Counted from the first letter of the whole stretch, positions 54,358-60,999 are shown. The stretch: 63,725 nt of DNA, filler included, from Octopus bimaculoides (GCF_001194135.2; 8 parts of 7 records of this genome joined end to end with filler, not necessarily neighbours in it), one strand, 5' to 3'. Notes: generated by a model not told the origin, from the letters alone. A program made the numbers and translations.

Positions 54358-54699
54358 GTTTCCTTTTTTGTACTCATAAAGCATTATGTGCCTTAAATGC
54401 TCTTTGTATACTTCCATGTTAGAAAGGGTTTTAATCAAAGACATTTTAATTCTATTATTCTGTAAAATAATATTTAATTGGTCTAAATGTGCACAAATGC
54501 ATAAAAATAATTTTTAATTCCATTAGACATTCTAAAATACTATCAAATTTCATTCAATTTTAAAAAAGGTAAAATCGGACAGAACTTCTGGGATGACCTG
54601 ATAGTTAGTACTGTTAGTATCAGTGTGCCTATTAGTGTTTGTGTCGGTTTCAACTGTGCGCCCGTTACCCTCCGAGGTGGGGATTATATTATGTATGTT

Positions 54700-55760
54700 T
54701 AAGTTGTTTAAAGTGGTCGGGCCAAGGGTACTGGATGTTATTGCAAGCGGTGTTAGTGTTTTCATTGTGTAGGTCTATGATAGGGTTGTACGCATTTAGA
54801 TAGTAAGAGCTAAGTTTATGTTTGTTAGATGAGGTGATGATAGATTCTATATTTGGTGCAGAGGAATAGGATAATTTCAAAGTGAATCTGTTAAAGATAG
54901 AATGGTACTTGTGGTTACGAAGGAAATTAGAGTCAACTATTTTAAAGAATGCTTTAGCAAAGTCCTTAACGTTTAAAGCGAATGGAGGTGTATACCAGAG
55001 AATAGATGTCCCGCAGCTTTTATTACGCAAATTTGGGGAGGTGTGATTCCTATTGTATGTTAGAGGGGAGTTGGAAGGATTGATATTAGTATTCTTAGAT
55101 CGTATGGGTGCTAGGCGGGCGAGATTGTCTATCCATAATGGGAGGCTTTGGATATCCAATATGTGTGCACGCTTGTCTAGGGTTAAGTTTAGAGAGGTGT
55201 TCTTTAAGTTTAGTGTTGGGTATAAATCTAATCTTCTGGGAGAAGCTAGAGATTGGTTGTAGTAATTGGCGTAGCTACTGAAGATTTCCTCAGTGGCGGA
55301 TAGATAGGATATTCTGATAAATATGTCTTTGATTATACTCTCGAAAGTAGATTTACGGTGGCTAAATTTAGTGTTGATGTACTTAAGGCATTGATTGGGT
55401 TTATGATATGGGAAGAAGAGTGAAGAGTTTAAATCTAATGTAACATCTAGAAAATTTGCTGTCTTGTAAGAGTTTCCAAAAGTGATAGATATTTTGAATT
55501 GGCGAAGAATTTATGCAAGACTTTTCTAGTTTCTTTTAATGCAGATTTTGTTAGGTCTGTTGCAATTAAAAATACATCATCTCTATATAAACCTCCTTTA
55601 ATATGGGAGAATTGTGTGTGGAGTTGTTGAAGGGGTACAGTCCGACAAGATCCGTGACCTGAGCAGAGTCGGATGAGCCCATGGTTATATCAATACAACG
55701 TGAGATATTCAGCAACAGTACTTTGTAGTAAAGATTGTTTGACAACATAACATGGCATGT
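54700..55760 (-). mobile_element. Decayed Penelope-like reverse transcriptase region
   Basis: TMGSSDSAQVTDLVGLY, then with frameshifts GLYRDD, ANFLDVTLDL..PYHKPN, and WYTPPF...HSIFNRFTLKLSYS. A near-identical 116-bp piece recurs at 56251-56366. Confidence 0.85.
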
Positions 55761-56826
55761 CACTTTGAAAACAATTTGACCTCTTTGAAAGTCTGATAGA
55801 TCTGTCATTTTAATAAATTTTAATTACTTTTTTCTGATGATATCTGAAAAGAAACAGCAATTTTAGCAAAACATATTAAGCAGCACAAATAATAAATCAA
55901 AAAACATAATAATATACAAGCTTTTGACAGTTTCATAGATATTTCAAAATTATGATGCTATGATGCTAGGTGCTTCCATTATTTTGTCCAACCCCTGTAT
56001 ANNNNNNNNNNNNNNNNNNNNNNNNNNNNNNNNNNNNNNNNNNNNNNNNNNNNNNNNNNNNNNNNNNNNNNNNNNNNNNNNNNNNNNNNNNNNNNNNNNN
56101 NNNNNNNNNNNNNNNNNNNNNNNNNNNNNNNNNNNNNNNNNNNNNNNNNNNNNNNNNNNNNNNNNNNNNNNNNNNNNNNNNNNNNNNNNTGTGTGTGTGT
56201 GATACATATATTTGTATGCATATATATGTATATATACTTGCATATATATATTTTGTTAGGTCTGTTGCAATTAAAAATACATCATCTCTATATAAACCTC
56301 CTTTAAAATGGGAGAATTGTGTGTGGAGTTGTTGAAGGGGGTACAGTCCGACAAGATCCGTGACCTATACTGAATATCCGGGGCCTATTACGAACAAGCG
56401 GCAAAGACAAGTTCCTANNNNNNNNNNNNNNNNNNNNNNNNNNNNNNNNNNNNNNNNNNNNNNNNNNNNNNNNNNNNNNNNNNNNNNNNNNNNNNNNNNN
56501 NNNNNNNNNNNNNNNNNATATATATATATATATATATGTTGTTTAAACATAACTAACATAACTTTCTTAGATATTGATGTAATTCTATCTGCCAAGCAGG
56601 CCCTCATATCCTTCGATAATAAGCTTTGGTCCCGTGCTAACCTCAGTACTAACAGAAACAACTTTGTGGTAAAAACGTTTGCTAACATAACATGGCAGTC
56701 CTGGTTTAGGACGAATGTTGCTATAATTTAGCCCCAGGATATAGTCCCCAGCTGGTTATACGACACAATCTGTGTCCTTATATTTTCGAACAAGGGAATC
56801 TAGCACACCTACTCAGCTCAAAACAA

Positions 56827-56875
56827 TATCAGTGTATCGCGATTTCCAGGTTATTTCTCTTCATCAGCACTAATA
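56827..56875 (-). ncRNA. Second minimal type-I hammerhead motif with a weak stem II
   Basis: Minus strand reads TATTAGTG-CTGATGA-AGAGAAATAACCTG-GAA-ATCGCGAT-A-CACTGATA. Stem I is 8 bp (one G-U), stem III is palindromic and the triplet is AUA; stem II pairs poorly. Confidence 0.6.
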
Positions 56876-57327
56876 ATTGTTCGGCTAGAAGTGGCGCTGC
56901 CAAATACCCGTTCGAAATATATAGTCTAAAAGTTGCTCTGGCCCCGCATTAGGCACGAAGTTGAAAATTTCTTTGACCCATGACACTCCATGGGCCCTAA
57001 GTATTGCATGAATAAAATTTGAATGAAATCAGTTGGGTACTTCTCGAGTTAAGGATTCACACATATAGACAGGCATACATACATTATTAGTTTTATATGT
57101 ATAGATACACATGCATGCATGCATACATACATTTGTTTATATACACATGTACTCACATACATATACTGAACATTGTATATAAATATATATGCACAAAGAT
57201 AGAGTGCGTATTGAAGTAAGTTACAACAGTAATTGTTAGTGTATAGAATGCAATGTAAGCAATACAAATTCAATTCCCCGGTGAACCCAGTAACAACAAC
57301 AATAATAATAACACCAAATGCAAATAT

Positions 57328-60300
57328 TTATTTGTCATAGTGAAAGAAAGCAAAAGATTGATGTCCTGGAAATATTCCAAAAACCATGAAAGAATTGTCT
57401 GAAATATCAAAGCCAAGAACTTGGAAAACCTCATTGTCATCCTCTCTGAGGAGTAAATATTTTTCAATATCTTTAGTTTGCAGGTGTTCACTATCTTCAA
57501 ATGTTTGACTTTCAATATGTCCAGGTATTTGGTAAATATTGTCTTGTGCATCTTTAATGTAAACATATTCATCAACTGCAGTTAGACAAGGTCTGTAAAT
57601 ATTATACTTTGACCTATTATATCGTGGTTGTAGTTTTATTCTCCTGACCAATGACTGTTCTGTGTACCAATCGACAAAGTAGTGATCATCATCACACCAC
57701 TGTCCCCCCTCTTCCTTCTCCCTCCTCGCAACAACGACATCACCAAAATATGTAACCACTACATCAAACACCACTGAATCTCCCTCTAATTTTCCATATT
57801 CTGATGTCTTCCCATGACACACTTCATATTTACACGTCCCATCATTGAGATCAACTACATCTACGTAATAAGAGTTGTAGGCGTTGGGGTCTTTGCAAAA
57901 GTAGTGAAAGTTGTTGTTGTAAAAAAACCTTCCGTAATGCTTGTCTCTCTCATGTGGAGTTATGTCTCTAATATAATAACCACCACACACGAGTTGATTG
58001 TCGTTGTATTTATAAATTGTGTTGTAGTATTTCTTTGTTTCAATGGTTTCTAAACGACAGAGATCTCTATTGAAGACCATCATTTCTTTACCAAAGACGA
58101 CTATGAATCGTTCATCTGTCCACCGACATATGCCTAGTGGTTGCTGTGGTAATTGTTTATGTTGAAGTATGTCACCTGTGGTTGTTCTGATTAATATGAC
58201 AGTGTCTCTAAACAGCAACACACTCACATTGTCATCTAACTTAATTAGTTTAGAGTTGTTGTCCCTAATATCCATACAATCATAATTAACAGGTTCATCG
58301 AATGTAGGAATGGAGAGAGGGACTATTGATGTTCTATGCGGCAGTCTCCTCACTGATATTTCATCAATTCCTGACATACTCTCTGCTATGTAATTACCAC
58401 ATCTCACCTTTAATCTACTTTTACAAGTTATTTCTCCTGATTTAGCTCTTTTTTCTCCTCTTTCATCTCCTCCACTATATTTCACTTTATTAATCAATTC
58501 ATTACTGAATATTTCGTTGTTCATTTGAGATGAAATGGAAGGGAAATGAAAGTCAGAATCAAGCTTTAATAACGCGAAAGATTTCAGAACTTCCAGTTGC
58601 TCTCCATCAATCTTTATGCTATCACAGTCAATCAAATTAATATGTACACACAAGTAAATATTTCCCACTTTCCTCCATATTACACCATAAGGTACTCGAC
58701 TTTGCCAAACTTTATATTTCTCCAAACCTTGTTGCTTCAATTGAAATATTTCTTGTCTGTTAGGAAATGTGGCCAATATGTTTCCTTCTCTTGTAAAACA
58801 CACACCACCAACCAAACTTCCAGCATTTCTGCAACATAGCAACTTTCCATCTTCATCAAATATTTTAAGATTTCCATTGTTAACTTTTTCACACACAACT
58901 GTGTGTCCTTTATCAGAGATATCAATATCTTTTACTTGAACAGGATATATGTCTGTTCGCAAACGAGAAATGGGGAATCTTTCTCGATTAAGCTTAAACA
59001 AACCTTCAATATACAATTTATTCCAATTGCTTCCAACAAACCTTGGTCCTTTACAGTTTATACTGGGGAAATTTACATAATCTTTATAAATTCTTTTATT
59101 TAAAAATATTTTGTTGTATTCACCAATCTCTGTCCAACACAAAATGCTATTGTATGCGATGAAAACACGATATTTATCCCACACACCATAAATGTACAAA
59201 TAACTGTCATCAATTGTCATCTTGTTTTTATCACCAAAATACCCCATGTAGTGTCTAACTGAATGTAAATATTGACCATCACTATTGAAGAAAATGATGA
59301 ATCTTTCATTACCAACAATGATCATGTCATGGGTAGTAACTGCTATATCAAGCATGTCATCATCATATCTACCATGATATTCGTCTCTCGTTAATAATGT
59401 TTCAGGTATGTCTATTTGTTTTATTTCATTCACAGTTAAATGTATTTCGTCAATCTCAACAACATACAAACTACATACATCTCTACGTCCACTACAAAGC
59501 ATTTGATTGTTTGAAAAAGAAGCAATACGGTAATATTCCTTTTCCGTCTGGTAAATTACTAATGACAATGGAAATTCCACTTTTAATGTCAACAGTTGGT
59601 TGTTATAATCACCAGTCGTAATAGCTATTGTGTTTGACTGCCATCGACACATATTGATACGGTAAACAACATTCAACTTGATCGAATCCAGAATTTTACC
59701 ATCAAATGTGACTATTATGAGGTTTTTGTTTTTCTTGTCATATCCTACAATTAGGTTATTTCCAGTAATAACCAAACTGTTAATCTCCACTGACTGCTTG
59801 TCTCCAAAACGAAGAGGGATGTCATCAAGATGAATATGTCTGGCTTTATCAGAAACTGTCAGATCCTGTAAATGTAATATAGAAGACAGCATTTCACTAA
59901 CACAGATGTTTCTGGAAAATACATCTACGAAGTCAATGCACATGTTAAGCTGACTATTTGTAACGAGATCGTTAATCTCCAAGTTATGATCATTTAAAGA
60001 AAACATACGGTTGTTGTGTATCAGATAAACAAACATTTTATCAATAGATCCACCATAAAGATTGGCGGAAGGTTTCCCTCGAGACAGTAAGACAGTCGGA
60101 ACCATCTTAATACTACGAATACGACCATCACAACTACTATTATTACTGCAATGACCACCACCACTGATATTAGTGTTGTAGTGAAAAGCTTTTCCCCTTG
60201 TAACTATTAATAGCTTTAGTGTTTCATGTTCTATTGCTAATGATTTCACTACAGAGGGAATATCAATTCTATGAATTATTTCAGCCTGATTATAATTTTT

Positions 60301-60999
60301 AATGGTTAAAATATCTAAATGAGATGGTTTGTCACAATAACAAGCAATTTGACCAATACCCAGCTTACATACCTGTACATAAGGGTGACTTAATGATACA
60401 CTTCTCACTGTCTTTGATAGGTTTCCAATGACCCTTAATTGTTTCTCTAAGGGTAATGTGACACCTATTTGATTAGAATCCCATTGACATATATCTGTAG
60501 CTGTAGACGGCAGAGATAATCTCGACACAATGTCTCCTCCATTAGAAATGTATAACAAGCAATCATGGTTGATGTCGGACACCACCAACTGTCCATTTGC
60601 CAGATGACATATTTTGGCAATAAGAAGTTTGTCATTCTCCTTTTCTTTGAGTCGTAGATTTAGATTTCTGATATAAGGATTTTTCAGGTGTAAACAACAG
60701 CCAGATGACCAGTCCTGATACTTGTAAAGAAGGACCCTGTTGAGTTGAGTGTCCGGTAGATAAACAGTCCCTTGGAAAACAGCAATGTGAGGGTGAACAG
60801 GGAAAGGCAGTTGCCACTGCCATTTAATTTCTCCATATATATCATAACATACAACAATCGACTGTCTCTTGAACAGGACATAATAATAAACATTATCAGA
60901 GTAGATGTGATGAGGGTAGCCATAGAATGGAAGGTATTTTTCAAAAAGTTCTTCACCACTTTTCGAATAAAATACCAATTTATGCTTCTTTCCATCTAT
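57328..60999 (-). CDS. 5'-truncated single-exon ORF (over 1220 codons) encoding multiple beta-propeller (NHL/TRIM C-terminal-like) modules
   Basis: No stop from the contig edge at 60999 (IDGKKHKLVFY...) to TAA at 57328-57330; the track's first 'M' is a TTG. Recurring blade-like motifs: DICQWDSNQIGVT, NMCRWQSNTIAIT, GVCFTREGNILAT, GICRWTDERFIVV. The fold call is inference. Confidence 0.85.
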   Translation of the reverse strand: MDGKKHKLVFYSKSGEELFEKYLPFYGYPHHIYSDNVYYYVLFKRQSIVVCYDIYGEIKWQWQLPFPVHPHIAVFQGTVYLPDTQLNRVLLYKYQDWSSGCCLHLKNPYIRNLNLRLKEKENDKLLIAKICHLANGQLVVSDINHDCLLYISNGGDIVSRLSLPSTATDICQWDSNQIGVTLPLEKQLRVIGNLSKTVRSVSLSHPYVQVCKLGIGQIACYCDKPSHLDILTIKNYNQAEIIHRIDIPSVVKSLAIEHETLKLLIVTRGKAFHYNTNISGGGHCSNNSSCDGRIRSIKMVPTVLLSRGKPSANLYGGSIDKMFVYLIHNNRMFSLNDHNLEINDLVTNSQLNMCIDFVDVFSRNICVSEMLSSILHLQDLTVSDKARHIHLDDIPLRFGDKQSVEINSLVITGNNLIVGYDKKNKNLIIVTFDGKILDSIKLNVVYRINMCRWQSNTIAITTGDYNNQLLTLKVEFPLSLVIYQTEKEYYRIASFSNNQMLCSGRRDVCSLYVVEIDEIHLTVNEIKQIDIPETLLTRDEYHGRYDDDMLDIAVTTHDMIIVGNERFIIFFNSDGQYLHSVRHYMGYFGDKNKMTIDDSYLYIYGVWDKYRVFIAYNSILCWTEIGEYNKIFLNKRIYKDYVNFPSINCKGPRFVGSNWNKLYIEGLFKLNRERFPISRLRTDIYPVQVKDIDISDKGHTVVCEKVNNGNLKIFDEDGKLLCCRNAGSLVGGVCFTREGNILATFPNRQEIFQLKQQGLEKYKVWQSRVPYGVIWRKVGNIYLCVHINLIDCDSIKIDGEQLEVLKSFALLKLDSDFHFPSISSQMNNEIFSNELINKVKYSGGDERGEKRAKSGEITCKSRLKVRCGNYIAESMSGIDEISVRRLPHRTSIVPLSIPTFDEPVNYDCMDIRDNNSKLIKLDDNVSVLLFRDTVILIRTTTGDILQHKQLPQQPLGICRWTDERFIVVFGKEMMVFNRDLCRLETIETKKYYNTIYKYNDNQLVCGGYYIRDITPHERDKHYGRFFYNNNFHYFCKDPNAYNSYYVDVVDLNDGTCKYEVCHGKTSEYGKLEGDSVVFDVVVTYFGDVVVARREKEEGGQWCDDDHYFVDWYTEQSLVRRIKLQPRYNRSKYNIYRPCLTAVDEYVYIKDAQDNIYQIPGHIESQTFEDSEHLQTKDIEKYLLLREDDNEVFQVLGFDISDNSFMVFGIFPGHQSFAFFHYDK

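Follow-up and report, generated by a model that had tools for sequence, protein, structure and literature searches.

The window analysed here, 63,725 nucleotides of Octopus bimaculoides DNA (GCF_001194135.2; eight parts of seven records joined end to end with filler), carries on its minus strand, at positions 57328-60999, a long open reading frame (ORF) that encodes the C-terminal part of the protein of gene LOC128251192. As judged by sequence and profile comparison, the gene belongs to an octopod-restricted, tandem-clustered family of single-coding-exon genes, whose products are predicted to consist of six NHL-type propellers and to be devoid of a ligase part. The protein is best described as a known kind of domain in a new architecture, within a family that is expanded and restricted to one lineage. 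This structural and evolutionary identity, taken together with a general mode of action as a binding scaffold, is given a probability of about 0.8; its structural and evolutionary part stands slightly more firmly when taken alone.

The kinship of the modules to TRIM-like NHL proteins is supported by three independent tests: a hidden Markov model (HMM) search, profile-profile alignment with hhalign, and AlphaFold2 (AF2) modelling with a comparison to neighbours in the Protein Data Bank (PDB). All three agree with the initial annotation of this DNA, which had likened the modules to the NHL-like propeller ending molluscan B-box/TRIM-like proteins.

The open frame and its gene

The ORF runs for 1,223 sense codons, free of stops up to the edge of its piece (window 54358-60999), and ends with a TAA at 57328-57330. 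The region is AT-rich, with a G+C content of 31-39%, and stops are frequent in it by chance, so that an open frame of this length is not accidental. The long intronless frame with about four modules described in the initial annotation, which named no strand, is confirmed, the window holding four modules and a part of another out of six. When reverse-complemented, the piece matches chromosome CM046628.1 of GCA_001194135.2 at 100% identity, where it corresponds to positions 13031-19672 of the locus sequence L003, and the gene is O. bimaculoides LOC128251192, located at ~12.08-12.10 Mb. A protein search with the ORF gave a 100% match to O. bimaculoides UniProt entry A0A0L8HQM5 (P0001), and the RefSeq protein XP_052833737.1 (LOC128251192, P0146) falls into the same 90% cluster.

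The edge of the piece adjoins a gap of 1,249 N in the chromosome-level assembly CM046628.1. The frame does reach the edge, as the initial annotation had stated, but the 'contig edge' is therefore an assembly artefact. The sequence directly upstream of the gap contains an ORF that starts with ATG and encodes 170 amino acids (aa) (L003 11272-11781), the N-terminal region of the family. These 170 aa, the ~416 aa that correspond to the gap and the 1,223 aa of the window add up to ~1,809 aa, as compared with 1,780-1,800 aa in complete paralogues. This fit indicates that the missing part of LOC128251192 most likely belongs to the same exon, within the gap, and not to upstream exons. The full protein would then probably be ~1,800 aa long and encoded by one coding exon, with its last two-thirds in the window. 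In five out of five complete paralogues (P0003, P0011, P0012, P0007 and P0036) the gene range is exactly 3 x (residues + 1), which means that each of them has a single coding exon. These five contain 1,712-1,870 uninterrupted codons, and the proteins of the family are ~1,660-1,900 aa long.

Both public models of LOC128251192 (1,045 and 1,092 aa; gene model range L003 10001-16702) splice out stretches of the continuous ORF of at least 1,223 aa. P0001, for example, skips ORF residues ~209-377 as if they were an intron. The RefSeq and UniProt models appear to be over-spliced, or truncated owing to the gap.

The N-terminal region of the family is ~140-180 aa long, variable and basic, and resembles a nuclear localization signal (NLS). 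Neither a signal peptide, nor a transmembrane-like N-terminus, nor a known domain was found in it in the full-length members and in the 170 aa of LOC128251192, and its hhalign probability against the TRIM-like alignment is 1.7%. Pfam detected no RING and no zf-B_box in the ORF, the five full-length paralogues and the N-terminal 170 aa of LOC128251192. The missing 5' exons with a B-box or RING that had been proposed at first are not borne out: the gap lies, most likely, in the same exon, and the complete paralogues carry neither domain. Reverse transcriptase, integrase, transposase and capsid domains were also absent from the ORF and the five full-length paralogues by Pfam, and the ORF is free of mobile-element motifs, as noted initially.

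One entry, P0061 of O. vulgaris (CATOCA020000001.1, L008, 3.14-3.21 Mb), has ankyrin repeats and a weak RING joined to parts of a family copy. This N-terminus was rejected, because the model spans 53.5 kb of spliced sequence, skips modules and is likely chimeric; if real, P0061 would be a ligase-linked relative of the family. The fusions to DUF4371 and C2H2 zinc fingers in P0006 and P0017 were likewise judged to be chimeric gene models.

Module architecture and kinship to TRIM-like proteins

Four motif blocks are visible in the ORF, at aa 169-173 (DICQW), 449-453 (NMCRW), 732-736 (GVCFT) and 956-960 (GICRW), with a spacing of 280, 283 and 224 aa. Low-complexity linkers are found at ~aa 276-289 (GGGHCSNNSSCDGR) and ~aa 840-853 (KYSGGDERGEKRAK). 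No internal repeat was detected when the ORF was compared with itself by BLASTP, which indicates that the repeats are too divergent for a pairwise search. The self-comparison mode built into hhalign gave no matches, and a windowed comparison was needed. The family alignment used was made with MAFFT from 20 full-length paralogues and the query (21 sequences). With windows of 160 aa, off-diagonal matches appeared with a period of ~260-285 aa, the best of them at a probability of 96% and an expectation value (E) of 4e-9, and several above 80%. Module VI of P0061 also aligns to module III of the window in a cross-protein BLASTP (E 2e-4). In the full-length family, alignment to a profile of module IV and TRIM-like domains resolves six modules in register (93.6-98.1%, E 2e-7 to 7e-14), and control templates gave at best 5.6% when reversed and 0.1% when their columns were shuffled. 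The modules are listed below in the numbering of P0003, in which the ORF begins at ~562.

Module I, P0003 144-360: 97.5%, E 6e-12; complete
Module II, P0003 416-623: 93.6%, E 2e-7; complete
Module III, P0003 671 to ~810: 98.1%, E 7e-14; reliable over blades 1-3 only
Module IV, P0003 936-1237: self (source of the profile); complete
Module V, P0003 1239-1373: 93.8%, E 2e-7; blades 1-3 only
Module VI, P0003 1457-1771: 97.6%, E 4e-12; complete

The window holds the tail of module II followed by modules III, IV, V and VI of the six in the whole family protein. Their placement is given below; pLDDT is the predicted local distance difference test score of the AF2 models.

57328-60999, minus strand: C-terminal 1,223 codons and stop of LOC128251192, cut at 60999 by the assembly gap
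60715-60999, minus strand: tail of module II (last blades), ORF aa 1-95; placed by hhalign, short beta strands in the AF2 model
60250-60672, minus strand: module III, blades 1-3, ORF aa 110-250, motif LVVSDINHDCLLYISNGGDIVSRLSLPSTATDICQWDSNQIGVTLPLEKQL; hhalign solid over template columns 15-158 only
59869-60249, minus strand: rest of module III, with extra strands, the Gly/Ser-rich linker GGGHCSNNSSCDGR and the conserved, predicted-helical segment IDFVDVFSRNICVSEMLSS; low pLDDT
58981-59868, minus strand: module IV, a complete six-bladed NHL-type propeller as predicted by AF2, Foldseek and hhalign, ORF aa 378-673
58564-58968, minus strand: half module V, comprising blades 1-3, ORF aa 678-812, motif VVCEKVNNGNLKIFDEDGKLLCCRNAGSLVGGVCFTREGNILATFP; hhalign template columns 17-153 only
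58315-58563, minus strand: linker joining modules V and VI, which contains four short strands and the low-complexity stretch KYSGGDERGEKRAK; pLDDT <50 at model residues 786-864
57331-58314, minus strand: module VI, a complete propeller with insertions as predicted, ORF aa 896-1223; hhalign template columns 17-292, pLDDT 80-94 in parts

The count of about four modules in the initial annotation is right for the window, and the repeats are real by profile-profile comparison, but modules III and V are recognizable over their first three blades only. The remainder of module III gave no reliable hhalign alignment to blades 4-6; column entropy is low at model residues 321-360, in the same part of the module. 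In the AF2 model, 12 strands fall in module V. Each of the half modules, III and V, may close alone, or the two may pair with each other; the 1,200-residue model does not distinguish between these arrangements.

The segment IDFVDVFSRNICVSEMLSS (ORF aa 345-371, window ~59887-59967), which separates module III from module IV, ranks with the most conserved stretches of the family. A helix is predicted for it with low confidence, and the TRIM-like domain contains nothing equivalent.

The relatives of the family were identified in a search of 1.84 billion representative proteins with hmmsearch and a family profile built from trimmed rows. Of 50 matches at E<=1e-3, the strong ones are all members of the family, and the first matches outside it are RING/B-box/NHL proteins, including those of cuttlefish and mussel:

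P0092, Acanthosepion pharaonis CAE1315789.1, 656 aa: RING, B-box and NHL; E 9e-9
P0094, 634 aa: B-box and NHL; E 1e-6
P0101, 864 aa: RING and B-box; E 1e-4
P0106, Mytilus galloprovincialis VDI39367.1, 621 aa: B-box; E 5e-4
P0109, 476 aa: NHL; E 8e-4

P0092, P0094 and P0101 each have one collinear match of ~220-230 aa, which finishes near the C-terminus, and the matches of P0106 and P0109 cover ~100 aa within the same domain. When the modules were compared by hhalign with an alignment of P0092, P0094, P0101 and P0106, all six fell on the same region, ~400-620, of the TRIM-like proteins:

Module IV against the TRIM-like C-terminal domain: 98.4%, E 8e-15, 220 columns
Module III: 97.6%, E 5e-12
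Module VI: 95.3%, E 2e-8
Module I: 91.6%, E 8e-7
Module V: 70%, E 4e-5
Module II: 31%, E 5e-4

Module IV is collinear from end to end with 11 TRIM-like domains in a MAFFT alignment, at an identity of 14-22%. The modules and the TRIM-like domain have a common motif, ...V(V/I)SD..N..(L/V)K.F...G.L......L...P.GIC.W....I.VTLP...Q(L/I), which reads FIVVSDRHSGALKKFGFDGQMLEEFELHSPPHGICLWANYEVVVTLPENKQI in P0092 and QLVVSDINHDCLLYISNGGDIVSRLSLPSTATDICQWDSNQIGVTLPLEKQL in module III of the window. A search of PDB sequences with the ORF detected no relative, and the only propeller signals given by Pfam in the ORF and the five paralogues were sub-threshold hints (Mala_s_1-like, WD40_CFAP43, Mcl1_mid and DUF4934).

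The fold of module IV is predicted with confidence. Modelled by AF2 on its own, from an alignment with TRIM-like domains, it forms 24 strands arranged as six four-stranded blades (pLDDT 84, predicted template-modelling score 0.86), in agreement with the propeller fold anticipated in the initial annotation. Its best PDB neighbours in Foldseek are the NHL domains of TRIM2, TRIM3, Brat, Thin and LIN-41/TRIM71 (7b2r, 7qrv, 7qrw, 1q7f, 6d69, 6fpt and 8j72; E 3e-10 to 8e-8, template-modelling score (TM) 0.61-0.70), and the NHL domain of TRIM2 is the top match (E 3e-10, TM 0.66/0.70). The 1,200-residue AF2 model is all-beta, with a pLDDT of 59.

It is scarcely credible that the modules are propellers of another class, WD40 or YWTD, and that the link to NHL and TRIM-like proteins is a by-product of blade-like patterns. 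The top Foldseek matches of the 1,200-residue model are indeed the YWTD and WD40 propeller arrays of LRP2 and DDB1 (E 1e-17 to 1e-13), and the family profile draws bacterial WD40, nSTAND and CHAT proteins (E 1e-14 to 1e-4) through positions ~650-737. The WD40 matches, however, sum many short hits to one blade, whereas the TRIM-like match is a single collinear one of ~230 aa, and the modules share P.GIC.W...I.VTLP...Q with the TRIM-like proteins. Module IV has six blades and is closer to NHL domains (TM 0.65-0.70) than to WD40 domains (TM 0.50-0.56), and neither WD40 nor Ldl_recept_b was matched on the ORF by Pfam. The modules are thus read, from profile and fold homology, as divergent members of the NHL propeller class that fall below the repeat threshold of Pfam.

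A blade of module V, VKDIDISDKGHTVVCEKVNNGNLKIFDEDGKLL (window ~58780-58970), is the part of the ORF that attracts the bacterial WD40/nSTAND, CHAT-domain and 'delta-60 repeat' proteins. These matches are probably due to convergent blade-like sequence summed over repeats.

Evolution and proposed function of the family

The protein search with the ORF returned 68 clusters, all of them octopod. Named members come from O. bimaculoides, O. vulgaris, O. sinensis and Argonauta hians only, and further fragments in the representative search are 42-96% identical to Octopus members. The copies are clustered. The paralogue P0036 is located ~100 kb from LOC128251192 on CM046628.1. In O. vulgaris, dozens of family models are found on OX597841.1, with copies at 9.57, 9.79, 10.30 and 22.66 Mb; the accessions fall within CAI9742752-CAI9743021, a run of ~270, and the identity among several copies exceeds 90%. 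The numbers of synonymous (dS) and nonsynonymous (dN) substitutions per site, estimated by the Nei-Gojobori method for the window ORF and two paralogues, are ~0.31-0.37 and 0.175-0.20, respectively, with a dN/dS ratio (omega) of 0.50-0.65. By this estimate, the family is under weak purifying selection, like other families that evolve fast. The initial annotation had proposed an expanded, fast-evolving, lineage-specific family, and dozens of clustered octopod copies with this ratio match that description.

RefSeq and UniProt list the members as 'uncharacterized protein', so that the family is not absent from the databases, but no paper describing it was found in literature searches, and to that extent it is undescribed, as had been suggested. 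PMC8382680 mentions no more than an orthogroup of B-box proteins that is expanded in bivalves. Lineage-specific expansions of protocadherins, C2H2 zinc fingers and G protein-coupled receptors have been emphasized in studies of octopus genomes. The present family would be a further large octopod-only expansion, the nature of which was overlooked because its members have no Pfam domain and are labelled 'uncharacterized'.

A comparison of three paralogous loci with their flanks showed that they share the ORF, patchy collinear sequence to ~1-2 kb upstream of the ATG, and 130-210 bp downstream; no terminal repeats were evident in these flanks. Partly shared flanks devoid of terminal repeats favour duplication at the DNA level over transposition or retroposition. 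It is highly improbable that the family is mobile-element cargo or viral and owes its copy number to transposition. Intronless genes in many copies, a dS that is similar within and between species, mobile-element debris around the copies (a mariner helix-turn-helix (HTH) at the edge of the piece, and interspersed repeats) and the gene models fused to DUF4371 or zinc-finger ORFs would all fit such an origin. Full-length members, however, lack capsid domains and the hallmark enzymes of such elements, the family is most closely related to TRIM-like proteins of the hosts themselves, cephalopods and bivalves, and the copies lie in local chromosomal clusters, in addition to the flank homology just described. 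Among viral structures, the best match is no more than a generic NHL protein of giant viruses. A viral origin, one of the options of the initial annotation, was rejected for this reason, the viral fold library yielding nothing but that generic protein.

The family most likely originated from a TRIM-like gene by loss of the RING and B-box, repeated internal duplication of the propeller, and subsequent tandem duplication of the whole gene in octopods. Modules I, II, IV and VI would have remained complete, with modules III and V retaining recognizable similarity in blades 1-3 only.

Low-complexity insertions occur in or next to modules IV and VI of P0056 (Argonauta hians) and of P0043 and P0022 (Octopus). 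They are of several types: a (TPPPLQYH)n-like proline-rich repeat, an acidic (EDQIS.ES)n repeat and a poly-Asp run. This suggests that the propeller loops tolerate large insertions.

With neither a catalytic nor an E3 domain, the family protein should be able to act only by binding. The top face of an NHL propeller is a ligand-binding surface, as is established for Brat, LIN-41 and TRIM2/3; it binds RNA in Brat and LIN-41 and proteins in others. The octopod proteins may accordingly be pictured as intracellular multivalent scaffolds or sensors presenting up to six propeller faces, or, alternatively, as RING-less competitors or adaptors of TRIM-like ligases. The biological role could lie in genetic conflict: antiviral, anti-transposon or other innate recognition. 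Descent from TRIM-like proteins, loss of the RING, clustering, growth in copy number and fast divergence together favour a role in recognition or conflict, yet a defence or recognition function is held only tentatively, at somewhat below even odds. The narrower proposal that these form a new octopod class of intracellular recognition proteins, multivalent sensors, restriction factors or decoys directed at viruses or transposons and thereby an invertebrate counterpart of the diversification of vertebrate TRIM5/PRY-SPRY, is doubtful.

The same architecture might instead serve post-transcriptional or developmental and neuronal regulation, in the manner of Brat, LIN-41/TRIM71 and TRIM2/3, and not defence. 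The nearest solved structures are RNA-binding or neuronal NHL domains, the family has no signal peptide, and its N-terminus is basic and NLS-like. Dozens of fast-diverging tandem copies with a dN/dS of 0.5-0.65 are, on the other hand, atypical of conserved developmental regulators. The net charge, summed over whole modules and not over surfaces, is -17 for module VI and -4 for module IV, in contrast to Brat and LIN-41, whose RNA-binding faces are basic. The acidity of these two modules weakens the case for regulation through RNA binding, and the regulatory reading as a whole is unlikely.

Several observations weigh against the favoured reading of an octopod family of six-propeller binding scaffolds. 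Pfam NHL (PF01436) had no match on the ORF even at E<=1, nor on the five paralogues at E<=0.1, whereas TRIM-like relatives pass its cut-off of 20 (P0092 with 29.1 bits and P0109 with 36.1 bits); the NHL assignment is consequently based on fold comparison and profile-profile alignment. The models of modules III and V and of the linkers have low confidence, and the closed propellers could number four, five or six. The acidity of module VI argues against RNA binding by this module. The dN/dS of 0.5-0.65 fits relaxed constraint equally well. All database entries of the family are predictions, and many of its gene models are fragments, which indicates that a part of the family is probably decaying. 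In all ten family clusters that were inspected for transcript-derived (Logan) members only genome-annotation entries were present, a result that is neutral on expression.

The fragments, and the spliced and truncated public models of LOC128251192, would be expected if this copy or the whole array were a cluster of pseudogenes, decaying or not transcribed, with the open frame as a recent relic. Very little credence can be given to this explanation. In an AT-rich genome, the frames run without interruption for 1,223 codons in the window and for 1,712-1,870 in the five paralogues, and they are intact, with a dN/dS below 1, despite an amino-acid divergence of 30-35%, which indicates that stops have been selected against. 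With the six-propeller reading, the family acquires a fold and an origin, together with a binding-scaffold hypothesis that can be tested.

Surrounding DNA and comparison with known systems

The remainder of the piece has features of repeat-rich DNA at several points. At its low edge, the last 20 codons on the minus strand (window 54358-54417) read MEVYKEHLRHIMLYEYKKGN, which matches the HTH of Mos1/mariner transposases (Pfam HTH_48, E 1e-5, 26 bits against a cut-off of 24.1). A mariner-like element begins here and extends into the next assembly gap (L003 19673-25979). Two gaps, of 188 N (56002-56189) and 100 N (56418-56517), lie ~0.8-1.3 kb downstream of the stop codon of the ORF, are flanked by (TA)n/(CA)n microsatellite and are also present in the chromosome-level assembly. 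A segment of ~117 bp, ggtcacggatcttgtcggactgtacccc...ttaattgcaacagacctaacaaaat on the minus strand, occurs twice at 98% identity, at ~55545-55660 and ~56250-56366, flanking the gaps; it is either an interspersed repeat, a local duplication or an assembly artefact. A minus-strand ORF of 156 aa at 54689-55159 (...SILWYTPPFALNVKDFAKAFFKIVDSNFLRNHKYHSIFNRFTLKLSYSS...) has no Pfam match and looks like a fragment of a repeat-encoded protein. An 80-aa ORF at 55566-55808 (MTDLSDFQRGQIV...) also gave no Pfam match, and no tandem DNA repeats were found in the piece.

Among known proteins, DDB1, with three WD40 propellers, and LRP2/megalin, with its YWTD arrays, resemble the octopod family in having several beta-propellers per chain and offer an analogy as multivalent docking platforms. 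Their propellers are of other classes and have no sequence relationship to the modules, and their TM to the 1,200-aa model is only 0.11-0.17, the arrangement of domains being different or not modelled. LRP2 is, moreover, extracellular and contains EGF and LDLa modules, which the octopod family does not.

TRIM2, TRIM3, TRIM71/LIN-41, Brat and Thin/Abba have the six-bladed NHL propeller fold that gives the best PDB matches of module IV. Their identity to module IV is 9-14%. These canonical TRIM-NHL proteins differ from the octopod family in carrying one propeller per protein together with E3 ligase domains, and in being conserved one-to-one across animals instead of forming lineage-specific arrays.

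The closest in sequence are the RING-B-box-coiled-coil-NHL proteins of cephalopods and bivalves (P0092 and P0106), whose C-terminal ~250 aa are homologous to, and collinear with, each of the modules. In these proteins one propeller follows a RING and a B-box, whereas the octopod proteins are predicted to have six propellers and neither of the other domains. To our knowledge, no described animal protein has several tandem NHL propellers and no other domains. Several NHL propellers in one chain without a ligase would be an unusual addition to a domain family that has been studied mainly as single copies.

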